Source: Lepidodermella squamata (lineage: Eukaryota > Animalia > Gastrotricha). Taken from it: a stretch of DNA of 64,000 bases. Both the position numbers and the translations under genes were made by a program. Positions 13,423 through 32,029 of this stretch are shown in pieces (within the stretch, counting starts at the first letter, position 1; each line of letters starts with the position of its first letter). The stretch is from contig JBLDXI010000013.1 in NCBI GenBank assembly GCA_047495785.1, positions 2,728,001 to 2,792,000 of the forward strand, read 5' to 3'. The notes beneath the pieces were generated by a model that had not been told where the DNA came from, searched no databases, and saw only the letters and a program-made list of their open reading frames with translations.

Positions 13423-16068
13423 TTAAAAACGAGATATCTGTCTCCGAAGATCGTAAACTCCAGAACCGTATGCAAAATCTGGGCCGTAAGTAGAGGGTAA
13501 ATTGGCTAAATGACGGCTTTGTTGAGGTCGCCCAGCTCTAGTTCGAGGAACACTTGTATTAGGGGAAACGCCGTCCATGTGTTGAAGGGTAGAAAGAACT
13601 CGACTGTTCGTGTTATTATTGTTTGAACCATTGCTCATTCGAGAACTAGCAATCAACGTGAAATAATAGTCTCTGATTTGTCTAGAAAACAAATAAATTT
13701 GTAAAATTCTCCCTGATGAATCGATTTAAAAATACCTTTCCGCATCAATCAATGCCCGAATAGCTTTCACTCGACGTTTCGTTGACATAGCATACAGGTG
13801 ACAGCAGATAGCGACAAAACAAACGGCAGTAACGAAAGAACCGGCGAGTAAAGGATGTCCCAAATTATCAGCAGCATCACCTGCCCCTGGAGACATTGCT
13901 CGCAGTTCGTCAAAAACAGTTTGCAAAGCGCTATTTAGACTCGCCATTGCAAAGGGGCCACAACCAGGTGACGCAAGCATAACAGAGGTGGCGTAGCCCG
14001 TGAAAGCCAGAGCAACGATGAAACAACCGCAAAGATATGCCAAATAAAAAGATTGCACTGTATCAGCGGCTCGCACCCGCCAAGTCAGGAAAGTATTTGC
14101 TTGAAGGTCCCAGCGTTTCAGGTAAAACAACACAAATCTCGTAAGAGAGGTAAACACCGGCAGAAAGGGCATGAAATAAACGCCCATCCAACAAATAGTC
14201 TGAATGTAGAACAAATTTATCACTTCGACAGGAAGCTCGAATTCACGCCGCCCGATTTTCTTCAAGAAACTAAACTTCTGATAACGGCCCACTTTTTCTA
14301 CCAGAATCCTTCTTAAATATGAATATCCAAAAGTAATCAGCAGCACATTGACCAAATCGGTAATAACGATTTTGTACAACTGCTCGCCAATGTTTGCTTC
14401 CCAGCAGTAAGATTTTTGACCCATCGTATCTTCAAGCTTGATAACAGCACATGAGAAGTCGCTTTTAGCGAGGCTGGTCGTATTTTTTGGCGTTGGACGA
14501 ATTGGACAAAGTTCTCTCAATTGAAATCCCAGCAGTGGAACCATAAATGTGATAACAGTTGCAAATCTCGAAACGATTAGCCGGAAGAGGATTACTTTGA
14601 TTTCTGTTTCCGGCGAGTAATTTTCGAATTTGGCCAAAGCCACGAAAACGTCAGGTTGGAAGGTGTTGAGAATGACAACGACAGTCGCTGGAAGGAAATC
14701 AGCGGAAAATGATGAAAACCAATCGTCAGCATTGTCCAACTGAATTTGAGCACATGATGAGCTTAGCAAAATCAACACAATGCCACCGACAATTACTGCC
14801 AGGGATATTATCATCAATATAGTACGAATGACCCAAAGCTTTACAGCAGCTATTGTCGTAAGTTTCTCGGTCGCAAGGCGACGAAGAACCCTTTCGAGTT
14901 CCATCTTCAAAAATCTTCTCAAAGTTGCGAGTCGCATGTCACATGAAAATCTCGTTGAAGTGACATGGTCCCATCCAGCAAAAACGACAGAGGAGAAGTG
15001 GTAGTGAAAATCCTCAGAGTGATGAGGCCCGTTCTCGACAACCGCTTTGTAAGATAGCACGAGAAGGCAAATGAAAGAAATCGTAAAGACAAGACCAATA
15101 ACACTGAAGTACAGCAAACCCCCAGGGAAAACTGCACCCTCTTCGCCTCGTTTTTGATACAATATGTCGGTGTAATAAGCATAGTACAAAGGTGACATAG
15201 TTAGGTAACCTTGACCACGCATGATATTTGTGGTATGTGAGATCCAGGATGCATTGTTATTAGATTCAGTTAAAACGTCCCTGAATTCGCGCGAACATCT
15301 TATGAAGAGATCCACGTAAGTTCCATTGCACATGACGGAACTGAGCTGTTTCATCTTATCGACACATTCACTTGCTTCGTTAATAGGAATATCAGGTGCT
15401 GAACTAGCAACAAGATATGGTAGAACGAGCAGAAAGAATATGATGAAAGATAAGAACACATTGAGAATGAAGAGGAATCTAATGAGTGAAAAGTAACTAG
15501 CAGCAGCTCTTCCAAAATAACTTCGAATTCTTTCCAAAGAGTTGTTCCACGGAAAATATTGATTACTCGAATCGATTTGAGGCCTAGCGACAAGGACTTT
15601 GTCAACCGCTGTTTGTAATGCCTTACGACGTATCGCACTAGGTCTCAAATCTGCTGATAGAAATACAGATCTCACTGCTCTAGGCAGAACTGATTCTCGC
15701 GATGCAGCGATTGATGCAATCGAAAGCGGAGACTCTAATGATGGACTGCTCACAACTGTCGAAATGCTTGCTCCAGTTCCAAGCTGTCGATATTTTAACA
15801 AGTCCTGACGGTAAAACAACGAGGCTCGCTGTAGGGCAGAACGAAAAGTTTCTTTTGAAGAGTGCTTGAAATAACTATCGTCAATATCGCAAGCTACGTT
15901 GCTAGGTAAGGCGGTCGCCAATTCAAAGAGATCATCATACTCCTCGTCGACATTATCGATTCCAACCAGCTCATCGCGAACAGCAGTTGAAGACGAGTTG
16001 GCCTGTTGCTGTGATTCAAGAGCTATTTCAGGAACATTGACGTATTGTCGCGGCCGCGAAAATGACAT
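13423..16068 (-). CDS. Transmembrane channel-like (TMC) protein, non-TMC1/2/3 (TMC4-8-like) type; 2 coding exons
   Basis: IRSYFGRAAASYFSLIRFLFILN; VFAGWD; FENY; TMC domain CWEANIGEQLYK...EFELPVEVINLFYIQTICWMGVYFMP; SPGCGPF. A short intron joins to the last exon ending at 13423. Confidence 0.9.
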
Positions 16069-19525: not shown

Positions 19526-20245
19526 ATGCATCAGCCGACAGAATGGACCCCGGTTTGTGGCGAGGAAGGAATGGTTGTGTGGACGGGAACAATGTTTGGC
19601 GTCTGCTTCGCCACGCTTCTGTTTAGCTACCTGGGACATTTCACGGCAATCGCTTGCACAGCTTTTTACCTGGGTCGATTCCCGAAGTCTACCGAAGTTC
19701 GCGAGCCGTTCGAACTGCCTAAATTGTACAGCTACTCGCTACAAGTCATTTTAACACTGCTGATTTGCGATCCTCTAATCAAACTAGTCATCGTCATTTT
19801 CGTCAGTGGCAAGCAGAATAGTTTTGTAGAAGACTTCAAGTTGATGCTAATGTTCACAACATGGGCATTGAATTTGACGTATTACCGACGATTGGCGATC
19901 AGTAACTATATTAAACTACCCGGTGTTGTGTCGATCACTGCTTCTATCACTTTTCTGTTTTTCGCCCAAATTCCGGTACTGCTGAGCACGGCCGACGCGC
20001 AAGATAGCTTGAACCTCGGGTTTTTGATCGCCTATCAAGTTTTGATGTTTTGTGCAATCGTCAATCTGGCCGCTCTGTTTTTCATCGTGAAGCGAACCAT
20101 GTTTCTACTGCCCGGCTATACCGACCTGACCGTGGAGTCAAATTTACCAGGTTCCACTCCTAGCCGGCCATTGTTCAATAACAATCGCCCAGAAACGTCA
20201 GACAAAGCTCCCGATGGTATCGACAACCCGGCTGAAGAAAAATAG
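19526..20245 (+). CDS. 5-TM membrane protein resembling the isolated TMD0 of ABCC10/MRP7
   Basis: N-terminal C-x7-W-x7-CF...H...AFYLG pattern (CGEEGMVVWTGTMFGVCFATLLFSYLGHFTAIACTAFYLG) like the ABCC10 TMD0; about five hydrophobic segments; in-frame TAA directly before the ATG; polar tail then stop. Confidence 0.65.
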   Translation: MHQPTEWTPVCGEEGMVVWTGTMFGVCFATLLFSYLGHFTAIACTAFYLGRFPKSTEVREPFELPKLYSYSLQVILTLLICDPLIKLVIVIFVSGKQNSFVEDFKLMLMFTTWALNLTYYRRLAISNYIKLPGVVSITASITFLFFAQIPVLLSTADAQDSLNLGFLIAYQVLMFCAIVNLAALFFIVKRTMFLLPGYTDLTVESNLPGSTPSRPLFNNNRPETSDKAPDGIDNPAEEK

Positions 20246-20614
20246 TCGTCTAATAAATTTGTCATCGAATACTTATTTATATTTTTTAGACTTGTAATCG
20301 AAATCGCTGAATCGTCTTTCTAAATTCGACGTCATGATTATTATTTGCTAGCTTGTTGGCGCTACCTTGATTTCTTTGTGAGCTGTATCTATTTATCTAT
20401 TCTTCAGTTCCGACTCGATCGCAATAATATGCAAGTTATAATCAGCAGTATGTAATTACGCAAATTTTTCAAAATTTATATCGACGCCAAGTTTTACAAC
20501 AAGAAACAAGTCAACGCCTTTGAAAAATGAGAAAATAAAGCTGAGTGTGTGCTAAACATGTTTTGTTGCTGCTTATTATAGACTATTTACCTATTCCTTT
20601 ATTTGCCTTGAAAA

Positions 20615-23195
20615 ATGACGGCATTCGAAGGTAATGTTTAGCATATTTACGAGCCTGGTTTTTGAACCTTGTCGCTTGCCTAGAAATGGGTGTGATGCCA
20701 GAAATAGCCGCTGCTGTTGAAGAAATGGGTTGGACGTGAGTTTTGCTGAAAGAAGGCATTTTGAAGCATCAATGCATTGTTGTTAGACTTCCCACTGATG
20801 TGCAAGCTGAAGCTATTCCTTTGATTTTGGGTGGTGGCGATGTATTGATGGCGGCTGAAACTGGTTCAGGAAAAACCGGCGTAAGAACCTGCTTTACATT
20901 CGGATTTTTTATCTTGAATTACGATATGAAACTAGGCCTTCTGCTTGCCTATCATCCAAATCGTGTATGAAACACTTCGAGATCTGAAAGAAGGCAAAGG
21001 CAAGACGGTAAGAGGTGGGGGCGGAAAGATTGAAGCCCGATGGCGTATGAATATTTACGACCGGGGTGATGCGATGGCGATTGATCTGGAACACGGTTTG
21101 CGGTGTCAGTCTCGTGATCAAGGCGGCTGGCACGGAACAAGGTTAACGAGGAAAAATGGAAAAAAAATCGTAATAACGTAATTTTCCAGGTGTATGAAGG
21201 GAATCTCGAACCACGGAGCGTATTACTACGAAGCAACTGTGACCGATGAAGGTCTTTGCCGCGTGGGTTGGTCAACAGCAGTAGCCGCTCTCGATCTAGG
21301 AACCGATCGTTGTGGCTTCGGCTTTGGCGGAACTGGCAAGAAAAGTTACGGGAAAGACTTCCAAACCTACGGCGAACCTTTTGGCCTCAACGATGTGATT
21401 GGCTGCTTCATCGACCTTGACCGTGGCGTTGTTGAATGGTCGAAAAACGGCCGTCTCTTCGGCAAGGCGTTTGATATTTCGCAGAATATGAGACGAGAAA
21501 CCTACTACCCGGCTTGCGTTCTCAAAAACGCTGAGCTTGAGTTCAATTTCGGCGAAACCCCGTTCAAACATCCGCCGCCTCAGCCGTACCAAGCGGTCAG
21601 TAAAGCCGCGGCTGATTGCGTGGCTTTGAACCCGAACACAACAGTGGCAGTTAAGGCGTCAAGCGGGCCGCCTAAGCCCAACGCACCCTACGCTGTTATC
21701 ATCGAACCATCGCGTGAATTGGCTGAACAAACGCTTCATGCTGTTCGTTCGTTCAAGAAGCATCTTGACCCGAAATCAGCCCCGCGTGAGCTACTATTAA
21801 TCGGCGGCGTCCCGGCTCGAGATCAAATTTCCGCCCTTGAAAACGGCGTGGAAATCGTTGTAGCTACCCCGGGCAAATTGGCCGATTTATGGCAGTCGAA
21901 AAACCTGCTATTCGAAAATGTTCGGTATTTTGTGCTGGACGAGGCTGATGGGTTGTTGCAGCAAAATTACGGCGATTTGATCCAGAAGATTCACGCGTCG
22001 ATTCCGAAAATTACGGTGGATGGGCGCAGGCTTCAGATGATTGTCTGCTCAGCTACCCTCCACTCGCCTGATGTTCGTCGAATGGCTGATCGCTTGATGC
22101 ATTACCCGATTTGGATTGACCTAAAGGGTCAAGATTCGGTCCCTGAAACAGTTCACCACGTCGTGTGTAAGGTGGATCCGTCAAGTGATGCGGGTTGGAA
22201 AGCGCTGTTTGGCAACAGAAACGCCGAAAGACGGATTGAGACTGATACGGTTCATGCCCAGGGTGATCGGCTTTCACCTCATGTTGAAACCAAAGGTAGC
22301 GATTTTTCGACTATTTTTTATTTCTCGATTATGATTTTTTCAAGAAATGCTCAGTGAGGCCGTCAAACTGCTAAAGGGTGAATACGTCGTTCGAGCTATC
22401 GATGCTATGAAAATGGACCAGGCGCTCATATTTTGCCGTACCAAACTCGACTGTGATAACATGGAAAATTTCCTCGTTGATCTGAGCAAGCGAAAACGCC
22501 CCGAAGACCGTTACACCTGTGTCTGCTTACACGGTGATCGGAAGCCTGAAGAGCGTCGCGCTAATCTCGAAGCTTTCAAGCGGAAAGAAGTTCGTTTCAT
22601 GATTTGTACCGACGTAGCGGCTCGTGGTATCGATATTTCGGGTCTGCCTTACGTTATCAATGTTACGTTACCCGACGAAATCCAGAACTACGTTCATCGT
22701 ATCGGCCGTGTTGGTCGGGCTGAACGAATGGGCCTTGCAATCTCTCTTGTCTCGAGTGTACCTGAGAAAGTGTGGTACCACAGCAATTGCCCTGATAAGG
22801 GTAGAAATTGCCGGAATACAAACCTGGTTCGCTATTCGAAATATGCATATAATTAAGGTAATTTTCTTGTTTTTAAGGTGGAAGAGGGTGGCTGTTGCAT
22901 GTGGTACAACGAGCCGAATTTACTCAGTGATATTGAAGACCATCTCGGTGTAACTATCGACACAGTCGACCCGGATTTTGTGATTCCTGTCAATGAATTC
23001 GATGGCAAAGTTGTGTATGGTCAAAAACGCCGGTCTGACCCAACTGGAGGCTATAAAAATCACGTCGCAAACCTAGCAACATGTGTCAGCGATTTGGGTC
23101 GGCTGGAAAAACGGGCTCAGGCTATTTATTTACACATGAAAAGTGATAAAGGAATCTGGCAAGCTGCAGCAAACGGAAATTCCAAAAAACCATGA
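20615..23195 (+). CDS. DDX1: ATP-dependent RNA helicase DDX1 (multi-exon)
   Basis: [14 protein letters not shown]...[31 protein letters not shown]; SPRY insert ([17 protein letters not shown]); DEAD; SAT; [19 protein letters not shown]; [11 protein letters not shown]. Confidence 0.97.
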
Positions 23196-24427: not shown

Positions 24428-27400
24428 TTATTTCTCTTCGAATCGCTTCTTTTCGAGCACAAACTTGAGGCCCTTGGTCTTCGAATGGAACCGAGCCAGG
24501 TCTTTCCGGGTAACAATACCAATGACATCGTTCATATCGTTGACAACAGTCAAGTGCCGCAGGCCTAGACCGCGGAACAGCTTGAAAATTCGAGGCAGTG
24601 ATACAGTCTGACAAAAATCCACCATAAAATTCAGAAATTACTAAATCCAAGTTTGACTCACATGTAAAACGGTGTATGGCGATGGATTCATATAAGGCCG
24701 CATGTCGATGTACATTTCTTTAATCTCTTCATCAGTCAGTTTGATATCCTGTACAAAATTGAAAAAAAATCATCCAACTGAAAATTAAGACTTCCAGGAA
24801 AAAACTTACATCAACGCTAAGTTCATGTTGGAAAAGCGTTCGGAAATCAGACAGCTTCGGCAGATCTCCAATAGGCTGGCCGCGGTTATTGCAGAAGCAT
24901 TTACGCTTGAGGAGGAAAAGCAATTGCTGACGCAAGATCAAGCCGCGAAGTTGGCCGTAGGTCATAAGCGATGATTTTCGCGTCGCTGGACCTTCAGCTA
25001 CCGGGAACCCGTTGTGCCGCACCTTTTTCAGAGTCGCCAGAACCCGACTAACAGGTTCGATAAGTTGGAAGTTCACAACAGGGTGACTCATGACCTCACT
25101 GAGAAAAACGATTAAATAAATGCAAAACGGTCGGAATTTCGATGATGCAAGAAATTTACGTTGCGTGAATTAAGGTGGAGAAGGGTGGCGGGTCGGGGTG
25201 AAGAAGAGGCACTCCAGATACTTCCAGATCAAGATCGTAGAGTGGCGCGGATAGCAGATCACCGATCCATTTTGTAATCATAAGGCACAACATGAGAGGA
25301 ACACCGAGAGTGATATCGCGCGTGCACTCCATCAACATGACCGTAAGGCCGACAACCATTCGCAATATGCCACCAAGCATACATGCAGCACCAATCAGCG
25401 CGTACTTGCGTATATTTCCTTCCTGTAACAAAAAAAAACATAGCGAATTATTATCAAAAATGATTGGAAAAACTTTGAGTGCACGAGCAAAATTTTAATG
25501 GACGTGACAACAAACGAGACAAGACGCAACATGCATGCGTGTTTGACATTTCAGTAAATATTTTTTAATCTCATTCAGGTTTCAAGAAGCCAAAAAGAAA
25601 ACATTAAAGCTCGATATAAATAATGGACAACACGTGTAATTTTTAACTGAACTTTGTCCACATACAACAACGAAAAATAAACAGTGGATCCAAGTCTCAA
25701 AGCCTACCTTTTCTTGGTTCCAAGGAAGATCCTGATTATCGATTATAATAAAGCGTGTTTAAAACGATGTTTTGTTATAAAAAAAATCAGATCAATTAGT
25801 TTTTTTTCCGGGGCAAAGAGCTCAAATTTTGAAATTCTTGACACTATTTTAATCCCAGAAAATTTTACACCTCAATTTAGACAGGTTAAATCAGAGCTCT
25901 TTACACAGATTCTGAAGCAAAAAAACTGGTCTTAAATAAATTGCAGGTAAGAAGTTAGGTCCACAAAATGGTAAAAATGGTCATAGCTCAAGCCTCAACT
26001 GTGACTCACCGGCTGCGGAAAGACGGTCATGACGCCCATGCCAATCATGCGGCCCCAACCGGCACCAATCAGCAGTCCAGGAATGAGGATGCCACCGGGG
26101 CACAACAAGCCGGTACCCCAGCACGTCATGATGAACCAGAACACCGTGTACACAATCAGCGTGTAGTAGTTGAAGTAGTTGGTCTGCGCGTGCAGCAACT
26201 GCTTCAGGCCGTGCTCGGCCGTGCCAAGCGTGAGGTAGGACATGGACGACACCTGGCCCTCGGGGCAGAACATGCGGAGCGGCTCGCCTTTGAGGTTATC
26301 GCTCGGCGGTTGGCACGACGGGTCGAGGTAGAGCATGAGGAAGTTGGCGACGGCCATGATCGCCGCGATCATGACGGCCTCGAGCACGCGCAGAACGCGG
26401 TTCGGGTTGATGTAACGCCGGCGGAAGACGTTGATTTTCATCGACAGATGAATGTACGCCGCGCCCATCACGCCGCCGAGGCAGCCGATGACGATGAAAA
26501 TGGGTATCTCAATAAGCGCGAACGACACATTGTCGAAGCGGCCGAATACAACGAGGCCAGGGTTGGACAGGTCGTGCGCGTGGCCGTGTTCAGCCGATAA
26601 CAACACGTTGACGAAGAACGAGGCCATCAGCGAGCAGAAGACAACGCGAAGCGTCAGCGTCGAGTCCCAGAAGCTGGCCGTTTCTTCGAGACTGAACAAC
26701 ACACCGCCGATTGGAGCACCAAACCCGGAACCGATACCGGCCGCAGCGCCCGCGGCCGTTATATCCCGCCTCTCTTGATCCGTATGAAGGTAACTGAAAG
26801 ACTATAAAACGACACAAAAATTAGTAAGCTATTAATTTTAAAATTGGAATTGGAATTGGAGTTTGGCAAAAATTTTGAAATTGTAAGATTATAATGACCC
26901 CTTTAAGGTTGATGAACGAATCGATATCAAACCAAAGCTAAAGACTATTTAAAAATGAAAGGGAATTTTTTCAAAAATAATCTAAAATTTCATTTTTATT
27001 CTCACAGGCTTCTCTGATCTCGCTCGCGTCCTACGTACTAGAAATATGGTTCACTCTACTTTCTTCGATCGAAAAAGGCAAAAACCCACGACTAAGAGCC
27101 CAGTAAATAAAAAAAATTCAGAAAAAATCTTCCATAAAAATGTGGATGTAAATTAAAAAAAATGAAAGAGGTCCCTACTGGTAGGAATCCGATGGGACAA
27201 AACTTGACCATGTCTTAAAATATTTTTTGCGATTTACTGGAAAATTCAGAAAATTCAGAAAAATGTCCACTTTAATTCCACGGTTCAATGAATTTAATAA
27301 AAAATTAATCTAAATTTTTAAGCGGAAAAAATTACCTTAATCTCAACATTGCATAAATCATAGCGAAAATATGAGGCACGAGCAGCAACAATGGCACCAA

Positions 27401-28633
27401 TGTGGATTAACGGACCCTCCTTGCCGTTGGGCATACCGCCCGACAGCGTACAGATAGTTCCGATGACTTTGACGATGAGCGCCTTGAACGTCAGCAAGCC
27501 ATGCATTCGGATACCGTTCAAGAAGGCCTTGACCTGGGCGACACCACCGCCGCCGGCTTCCGGCTGTAACACCAACACCAGGGTACACGAAACGAGAACG
27601 AAAGCGCAATTCATGCCAATCCATAACAACAACGGCTGATAAAGACAATTGCCTTCTTCCGTAACACATTTTTTCATGACTAGATGAAAAAAAATCACAA
27701 AAAATAGCCGAAAAATAAATTGACAAAATTGGCTTACATTTTGCCACAAAATCGTGCTTAGCAGTAGAGCAAAACTTGATTCCAACATCAACAGTAAATG
27801 CACACAACGCGATACCGGCCGCCGTGAGAAAGTAAATAAACCAGCGACCAATGAAAGTAAACCAGGCACTCTAAAAAAATTTGCAAAAATTGGGTCAGAG
27901 GAATATTGGGTCATGAACATCTCGCAAATGTTACCCGAGATTTAAGACTTCGCTGTTCAGCTTGGTAGAGCAGATTTTCACACACATCGTAGTCCAAGCT
28001 TTCAAACTTGGAAACAAGACGATGCTTCAGCGATTTAACCGAGAAAGGCTTAGCAGGCGGGCCGTGCGGTTGGCCTTGATTGAAATAACCCTGATGGTGG
28101 CCATACGCAAAGGTTTTTTGATTTTGCTTCTGAACAATCTGTTGAAAACAAACAGAAAAAAATTAATAAAAAAACCGAGGAAAATTGCAGCTATATACAA
28201 AAAATTTAAAGGAATACTTAAATAATAAACGCATACATCTTTAAATAATACACCGAACGCAATTAATGGGAATCAACACGTAATAATTGTTAATTGCTCT
28301 CACTGTTGAGTGATCTTCATCTGAAAGCGCAAAAGAGCGCATCGTTGGGACGCGCCTAAACCGGGCGTCGAGCGTATTCTGGCCCGAATCGTCGGCGTCA
28401 TCGCTCAACGCCGCCGCTGCTGAAGAGATGCCATCTTCGTTGTCGCTCATCTGTTTAATCTGCTCGCTGACCGAGCGGACGAAAGTTGCGATGGCGCCGG
28501 CTGGCCGACGATGACGGCCACCACCGCCTTCATCGCAACTCACCGACGCCTCGTCATCTTCCTCCTCCTCGTCGCCTTCGGGTGTCGTCACAAAAATCTT
28601 CATCTCAATGCCGTTTCTTTTATGGCCGCTCAT
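24428..28633 (-). CDS. CLC-6/CLC-7 family Cl-/H+ exchanger-type protein with two CBS domains (proximal isoform; alternative 5' exons extend to about 37023)
   Basis: [11 protein letters not shown]; GKEGP; AGAAAG...[14 protein letters not shown]; GILIP; YALIGAA..LGG; LYD; CBS segments HNGFPV and [12 protein letters not shown]...GIVTRKDL. Confidence 0.93.
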
Positions 28634-31604: not shown

Positions 31605-32029
31605 CAAATCTTTCAGCTTTTGGCCCATTTCGAAATCGCCATCTCGCATCAAAGACAAGTGTTTCACGGTCCATGTAAATGTGTCAACGCTAGCCGAATC
31701 TGTCGGACTCAATTCGTCTGGGCGCCAATACGAGTCATCGACATCAACAGATAATGCAGCTTGAAAAATAGTTCATTAATCACAGCAGAATTAAATTAAA
31801 TTAATAAAATACCTGAGTGATCCAAGTTATCAGCATTTGACAGCAGTGAAGCATCCTGTTCGGCATCGATCGCCGGAATCGCATCCCCCTCTTCGACAAT
31901 TCGCGTAGAGGACGGCGGCCGCCGGCGCCGTGCGCTACCTGGTGCCGTATTAATCGGCACTCCGAGATTGCCCGATGGTGTGACATTAGCCGTCGGCTGG
32001 TCAGGATGGCTAACTGGTGTCACCGTGAA
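31605..32029 (-). CDS. Putative internal N-terminal exons of long CLC isoforms (32029-31813, 31759-31605)
   Basis: Both exons are open, joined by a short phase-1 intron; phase-0 entry and phase-0 exit (TTG|gtaag). Confidence 0.6.

Follow-up and report, generated by a model that had tools for sequence, protein, structure and literature searches.

CLC-7 is the human lysosomal exchanger, and its mutation causes disease. The known CLC channels lack the internal proton glutamate, and CLC-K lacks the gating glutamate too. To our knowledge, a nitrate preference at the central position of the anion pathway is known for Pro only, the known switch being from Ser to Pro. How CLC proteins couple two Cl– to one H+, and how channels originated from exchangers, has been argued mainly from engineered bacterial mutants. 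With the mutation S107G in E. coli CLC (CLC-ec1, EcCLC), Cl– is transported at twice the rate and H+ coupling falls 3-fold, and the S107G/F348A double mutant has lost coupled H+ transport almost completely (PMC6019066). Mutant F357L, in which the aromatic ring is lost and the volume retained, behaves much like F357A, with a turnover ~9-fold slower and a Cl–:H+ ratio of about 4.3:1 (PMC7274781). The central Phe at this position is ~76% conserved over CLCs, and its replacement in CLC-7 (F514A) shifts gating to the left and makes it faster (PMC7274781). The gating glutamate, when in the central site, is held there by the hydroxyl groups of the central Ser and Tyr (PMC5379918).

Other natural family members vary at the same positions. 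CLC-1 and CLC-K have Thr at the position of EcCLC F348, and the central Ser of CLC-K points away, effectively out of the site; as a result, the barrier that separates the central site from the inner one is lower (PMC6019066). What the Ser side chain contributes to selectivity differs among CLCs, the backbone amides being major determinants, and selectivity is almost unaltered in CLC-1 S189P and CLC-K S121P (PMC9726985). Here we describe a CLC-7-like gene that carries a natural, selection-tested set of three such mutations, together with the loss of a motif Pro, in the clade of human CLC-7. As a natural experiment, it is of value for the study of coupling and of the boundary between exchangers and channels.

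A transcribed CLC-7-like gene

The window, i.e. the whole 64-kb stretch of DNA that was analysed, contains a CLC-7-like gene with a transcript-supported body at 24428..28138 on the minus strand. Its exons lie at 28138-27935, 27870-27738, 27679-27336, 26801-26010, 25422-25160, 25098-24810, 24748-24662 and 24607-24428 (including the stop codon), with GT..AG at all junctions. The genome is that of an invertebrate and is compact, with introns of ~55-60 bp. Two public sequencing runs contain the stretch (n = 2), a DNA run from 2024 (X1) and a run from a separate study of 2015 that is labelled probable RNA (X2). A 2829-nt contig of X2 is spliced and exactly skips the seven downstream introns, and within exons 4 and 5 it has 0 differences from the window. 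Compared with the window, X1 DNA contigs show dense substitutions and small indels in introns (25430-26002 and 26986-27255) and near-identical exons, which looks like a divergent allele, a homoeologue or a strain.

A gene model built on canonical GT..AG junctions had nine exons, encoded 873 aa and ended at 24428. Its open first exon (28304..28633, minus strand) is an ORF with a GT donor that does not occur in the X2 transcript; it lies inside an intron spliced out of that transcript, where X2 contigs are of low depth only. The X2 contig continues for 170 loose letters past 28139, with an exact match to 31606-31635, and thereby splices exon 28138 to an upstream coding exon at 31606..31771 (minus strand), which encodes ..VDTFTWTVKHLSLMRDGDFEMGQKLKDL. 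Since the X2 transcript bypasses exon 28633-28304, the first 110 residues of the 873-aa model are unsupported, and this exon is at best an alternative first exon. The frame of exon 31606-31771 is open up to its own acceptor, which places the true start further upstream. A counterpart of this exon lies upstream of the genes of a metagenome relative (see below), and its peptide ..VDTFTWT.KHLSL.. is conserved there, including upstream of the paralogue B′. The uncertainty at the N-terminus of the model does not affect the transmembrane domain.

Four pore positions are replaced and the glutamates are kept

Residue equivalences were derived with phmmer against all PDB chains, and the alignments are ungapped across the motifs. 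On the minus strand, 27534-27560 reads E A G G G G V A Q. The original prediction, made from the letters of this stretch, was that GGGVA replaces the GSGIP of CLC-7, and the alignment of exon 4 to human CLC-7 (7bxu/7jm7; E 1.6e-22) bears this out. The five codons of the motif (G266 G267 G268 V269 A270) are at 27537..27551 on the minus strand, where canonical CLCs have GSGIP; G267 (27546-27548) replaces the central Ser (human CLC-7 S204) and A270 (27537-27539) replaces the Pro (P207), while both flanking Gly are kept. Similarly, the predicted change of GxFxP to GILIP (G574-P578; 26079..26093, minus strand) was recovered in the alignment of exon 5 to CLC-7 (E 3e-69). The Gly and Pro of this motif are kept and the Phe is Leu, with L576 corresponding to EcCLC F357 and human CLC-7 F514. 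The same alignment revealed a further replacement at a pore-lining position, T567 (26112..26114, minus strand), which is equivalent to EcCLC F348 and human CLC-7 Y505. In human CLC-7 numbering, the four pore replacements are Ser204 to Gly, Pro207 to Ala, Phe514 to Leu and Tyr505 to Thr.

In agreement with the original prediction, the gating Glu, the proton Glu and the central Tyr are unchanged, as is the outer Phe. The gating glutamate is E310 (27417..27419; human CLC-7 E247) in GKEGP, which conforms to the G(K/R)EGP motif of the family. The internal proton glutamate is E377 (26682..26684; E314) in SLEE, and 13 codons upstream of it is the outer Phe, F364 (F301), in GFGAP. Exon 6 (E 4e-19 with CLC-7) contributes the central tyrosine Y663 (25237..25239; Y602) in LYD. 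All of these codons are on the minus strand, and by alignment the residue set of an exchanger (E377, E310 and Y663) is complete.

A sequencing error at the motif codons had been named as a possible flaw. None was found: besides the agreement of the X2 contig in exons 4 and 5, the X1 DNA contig over 27227-27879 has no listed difference at 27534-27560. These identical letters in independent RNA and DNA contigs rule out a sequencing error.

The gene belongs to the animal CLC-7 clade

Exons 4, 5 and 6 match Pfam Voltage_CLC (PF00654) with E 1.5e-15, 7.8e-42 and 8.3e-10, and together cover positions 2-345 of the 346 in the profile. In the CBS region, the second CBS domain matches Pfam CBS (E 3e-6) in the last exon (24428..24607, minus strand), the first-CBS exon has no Pfam match, and the C-terminal region aligns to CLC-7 relatives up to residue 867. 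For the transmembrane exons, phmmer ranks PDB structures in the order CLC-7, CLC-6, CLC-a, CLC-3. The vertebrate CLC-7 structures (human 7BXU/7JM7 and chicken 7JM6), which represent a 2 Cl–/1 H+ lysosomal exchanger, are the top match for all of these exons, and identity to a fish CLC-7 (P0016) is ~41% over ~730 residues. The protein shares with vertebrate CLC-7 a CLC transmembrane domain followed by a C-terminal CBS region, as well as the gating Glu, proton Glu, outer Phe and central Tyr, and differs from it in having Gly for S204, Ala for P207, Leu for F514 and Thr for Y505.

A maximum-likelihood tree places the gene within the animal CLC-7 clade (100/100). There it belongs to a six-row subclade (99/98) that includes two unnamed transcriptome proteins and a CLC-7-like protein from the nemertean Tubulanus polymorphus. 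The latter, annotated as 'H(+)/Cl(-) exchange transporter 7-like' (XP_074644384.1; P0055), is the closest named full-length protein, with 44% identity. Like that of the CLC-7-like gene, its residue at the Tyr505 position is small (Cys); unlike the CLC-7-like gene, it has canonical GSGIP, GKEGP and GIFIP motifs. Another member of the subclade, an 839-aa protein from a Logan transcript contig (P0013; L010), has GGGVP, GDKEGP with an Asp before the Lys, and Ser where human CLC-7 has Tyr505, and it retains the central Phe; this protein may be an intermediate, or may have lost the central Ser independently. A canonical GSGIP gene from another compact genome (L016) has ~45% identity in the best-aligned exons and is not closer than other CLC-7s.

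Proteins of this lineage are poorly represented in databases. The window also has an uninterrupted 780-aa ORF with a TMC domain (13726-16068, minus strand; Pfam E 8e-26), for which a word search at a cut-off of 1e-20 had a sole match, frog TMC8 at 26% identity, a mark of an isolated lineage.

The variant motifs are conserved in an orthologue and a tandem paralogue

An exhaustive HMMER search of 1.84 billion representative proteins with exon 4 as the query returned 3299 CLC relatives, only two of which had E < 1e-30 (P0001 at 85% and P0002 at 62%); no further close member of the subfamily was found among these representatives. Word searches with exons 4 and 5 agreed. Exon 5 gave the two genes described next (A′ and B′), and everything else, from other samples, was at most 48% identical. 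Two scans of JGI metagenomes for more members of the subfamily gave only relatives at 33-39%.

P0001 and P0002 proved to be ORF fragments on one ENA metagenome contig, which recurs in the assemblies of several samples. Splicing this contig by hand yielded two intact tandem genes, A′ and B′, with 81% and 62% aa identity, respectively, to the CLC-7-like gene. B′ is at 5664-8300 of contig L004 and is also present in L001, L005 and L006. A′ and B′ both have GGGTA, GILIP and Thr at the Tyr505 position, within surrounding blocks that are almost invariant. The proton Glu is invariant among the three genes. B′ departs further, with GKEAP for GKEGP and Phe for the central Tyr; as a Y445F mutant remains well coupled (PMC2151619), the Phe of B′ alone need not abolish coupling. 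These conserved relatives, the tandem paralogue and the Thr at the Tyr505 position all add to the original prediction.

To judge selection, we compared the CLC-7-like gene with A′. Where the two encode an identical residue with a four-fold site, the third position differs in 74% of cases, which amounts to saturation, and differences at these sites were used in place of dN/dS because saturated synonymous sites give no estimate of dS; dN was 0.14. The Gly run of the motif is itself encoded by different synonymous codons in the three genes (GGC GGC GGT GGT, GGT GGT GGA GGT and GGT GGC GGA GGA). That the motifs were kept while synonymous sites became saturated indicates long-term purifying selection on the variant motifs.

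Together, a sequencing or assembly error and a decaying pseudogene have a negligible probability, and no evidence in support of either was found. A pseudogene is ruled out by the intact frame, the canonical splice sites and the conservation of the motifs in two more genes despite saturated synonymous sites. The CLC-7-like gene is real and transcribed, it is maintained by selection and it belongs to the animal CLC-7 clade. It is a conserved natural variant within a well-known transporter family and not a new kind of system, and on these grounds an effect of the variant on function is plausible.

The combination of replacements is rare

The rarity of each replacement was assessed in 69 database relatives of at least 400 aa, a set enriched for likeness to the CLC-7-like exon. 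The column of the central Ser contained S in 62, G in six and D in one, and Gly at this position is therefore not unique, occurring sporadically in other eukaryotic CLCs. At the Pro of GSGIP, P was present in 57 relatives and A in one. The central Phe was F in 52 of 57, with no Leu among the 57, and the Tyr505 column held Y (33), F (9), S (5), C (2), V (1) and I (1), so that 42 of 51 had Y or F. Among the sampled relatives, the combination of pore changes occurs only in the CLC-7-like gene, A′ and B′.

These counts bear on whether the gene might simply be an ordinary CLC-7 orthologue in a fast-evolving lineage, in which normal 2 Cl–/1 H+ exchange persists and the substitutions are tolerated, or compensated through the backbone amides. 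We treat this as a tentative possibility and the lesser one. It is consistent with Gly in 6/69 long relatives, with a central Phe that is only ~76% conserved (PMC7274781), with a role of the Ser that is not conserved (CLC-1 S189P and CLC-K S121P; PMC9726985), with the presence of all catalytic glutamates and with other very divergent proteins in this genome, such as the TMC-like ORF. However, four pore positions were altered jointly and then frozen in an orthologue and an old paralogue, Leu in place of the central Phe is absent from the sampled relatives, as is this combination, and EcCLC changes at the matching positions degrade coupling (PMC6019066, PMC7274781).

Predicted consequences for transport

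We propose that the protein may be a leaky, weakly coupled anion/proton exchanger with a remodelled central site, a reading to which we give about even weight. The expectation is drawn by analogy from the E. coli CLC mutants, CLC-7 F514A and the hold of the Ser and Tyr hydroxyls on the gating Glu. The four substitutions would remodel the central anion site and the barrier below it, and glutamate-gated anion/proton exchange would be retained, probably in endosomes or lysosomes. Anion binding at the central site would be weaker and the barrier towards the cytoplasm lower. Anion flux is predicted to be faster, with slippage and fewer protons per anion than the canonical 2:1, possibly with faster gating and a more permissive anion series.

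The engineered CLC-ec1 mutants S107G, S107G/F348A and F357L are the nearest experimental counterparts, as their replacements are of like kind and fall at the same three positions of the pore. In contrast to the natural set, they are bacterial laboratory mutants that were tested singly or in pairs and were not shaped by selection, and the double mutant has Ala where the CLC-7-like gene has Thr. Effects of bacterial point mutations may not transfer to a CLC-7 background with co-evolved neighbours. Gly and Leu also keep the backbone amides, on which much of the coordination of the anion depends, and the Ser side chain does not play the same part in all CLCs (PMC9726985). Furthermore, both glutamates are under selection, which suggests that proton transport still matters, and the nearest canonical relative (Tubulanus, with Cys) has a small residue at the Tyr505 position too. 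The stem of the subfamily is also long (0.82 changes per site) but not extreme when compared with neighbouring end branches (0.5-1.0).

The original prediction had proposed a different anion or altered H+ coupling. Its anion half is the weaker one, given that the nitrate switch known to us involves Pro only, that the role of the Ser is not conserved and that Gly is present in six of the 69 relatives. By analogy with plant CLCa, the exchanger could have stayed tightly coupled and been retuned to another anion, such as nitrate or a different polyatomic one. Such retuning would require Gly to act where the known switch is to Pro, and no physiological reason for it is evident; we consider it improbable. 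A Gly-rich loop and smaller side chains would nonetheless enlarge the site, and the NO3–/Cl– preference of AtCLCa, CLC-5 and CLC-0 is set by the residue at the central site (PMC3243520, PMC9726985). AtCLCa, a NO3–/H+ exchanger with GPGIP, resembles the CLC-7-like gene in its natural loss of the central Ser, the functional consequence of which is proven in AtCLCa (as cited in PMC3243520 and PMC9726985). It differs in having Pro rather than Gly, in keeping the Pro of GxGIP and the central Phe, and in belonging to another branch (CLC-7-like exon 5 matches CLC-a structures with E 1.7e-26). In addition, GKEGP retains its Lys, a residue that is important to how CLC-5 discriminates NO3– (PMC3243520), and EcCLC S107G leads to slippage and not to a new coupled substrate (PMC6019066). 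The coupling half of the prediction has direct EcCLC analogues (PMC6019066, PMC7274781), and the leaky exchanger is the form of it that we prefer.

At the far end of this scale would be a fully uncoupled, glutamate-gated anion channel, arising from an independent exchanger-to-channel transition in the CLC-7 clade, which we regard as very improbable. The internal proton Glu, missing from the CLC channels known to us, is strictly conserved in all three genes, and the CLC-7-like gene has the central Tyr. Favouring such a channel, the natural combination resembles EcCLC S107G/F348A, in which coupling is nearly lost, and Thr at the F348 position is the state of CLC-1 and CLC-K (PMC6019066). CLC-1 and CLC-K differ from the CLC-7-like gene in being plasma-membrane channels of another CLC branch, and the CLC-7-like gene has both glutamates. 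It is likewise doubtful that this CLC-7 branch independently crossed, or nearly crossed, from an exchanger to a glutamate-gated anion channel. The route would be the one by which E. coli CLC was engineered towards channel-like behaviour: the side chain of the central Ser would be lost, the F348 position would take on a small polar residue and the central aromatic would disappear. If true, exchangers would have given rise to channels in nature a second time, here at a stage when both glutamates are still present.

Either outcome would be informative. A leaky or uncoupled protein would reveal which residues suffice in a eukaryotic background and an animal able to run an endolysosomal CLC in that mode. 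A normally coupled protein would mean that residues held to be important are dispensable in this context, which would be as informative for models of transport. A close orthologue and an older paralogue that goes further (Tyr to Phe, and GKEAP) are available alongside.

Gene order and introns around the subfamily

A tblastn search of the 64-kb window found one CLC locus and no second CLC gene. In the metagenome relative, the gene order is the upstream N-terminal exon, A′, B′, a DDX1-like helicase and a TMD0-like gene; the window has the same order minus B′, and the syntenic comparison found no B′ counterpart between the CLC-7-like gene and the DDX1-like gene. In the tree, B′ lies outside the group of the window gene and A′ (99/99 and 100/100). 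Therefore, the duplication happened before the two species diverged, and at the syntenic place the window lacks the copy. The downstream neighbours in the window, a DDX1-like DEAD/SPRY helicase and the TMD0-like gene (19564-23155), have 70-90% identity to the metagenome relative in tblastx segments. Two short introns of the CLC-7-like gene, 27680-27737 (58 bp) and 24749-24809 (61 bp), are absent in A′ (L004 1400-1876 and 3472-3852). B′ has its own set of introns, with an extra one inside ..SKYE|SLDYD.. and none at several of the window positions.
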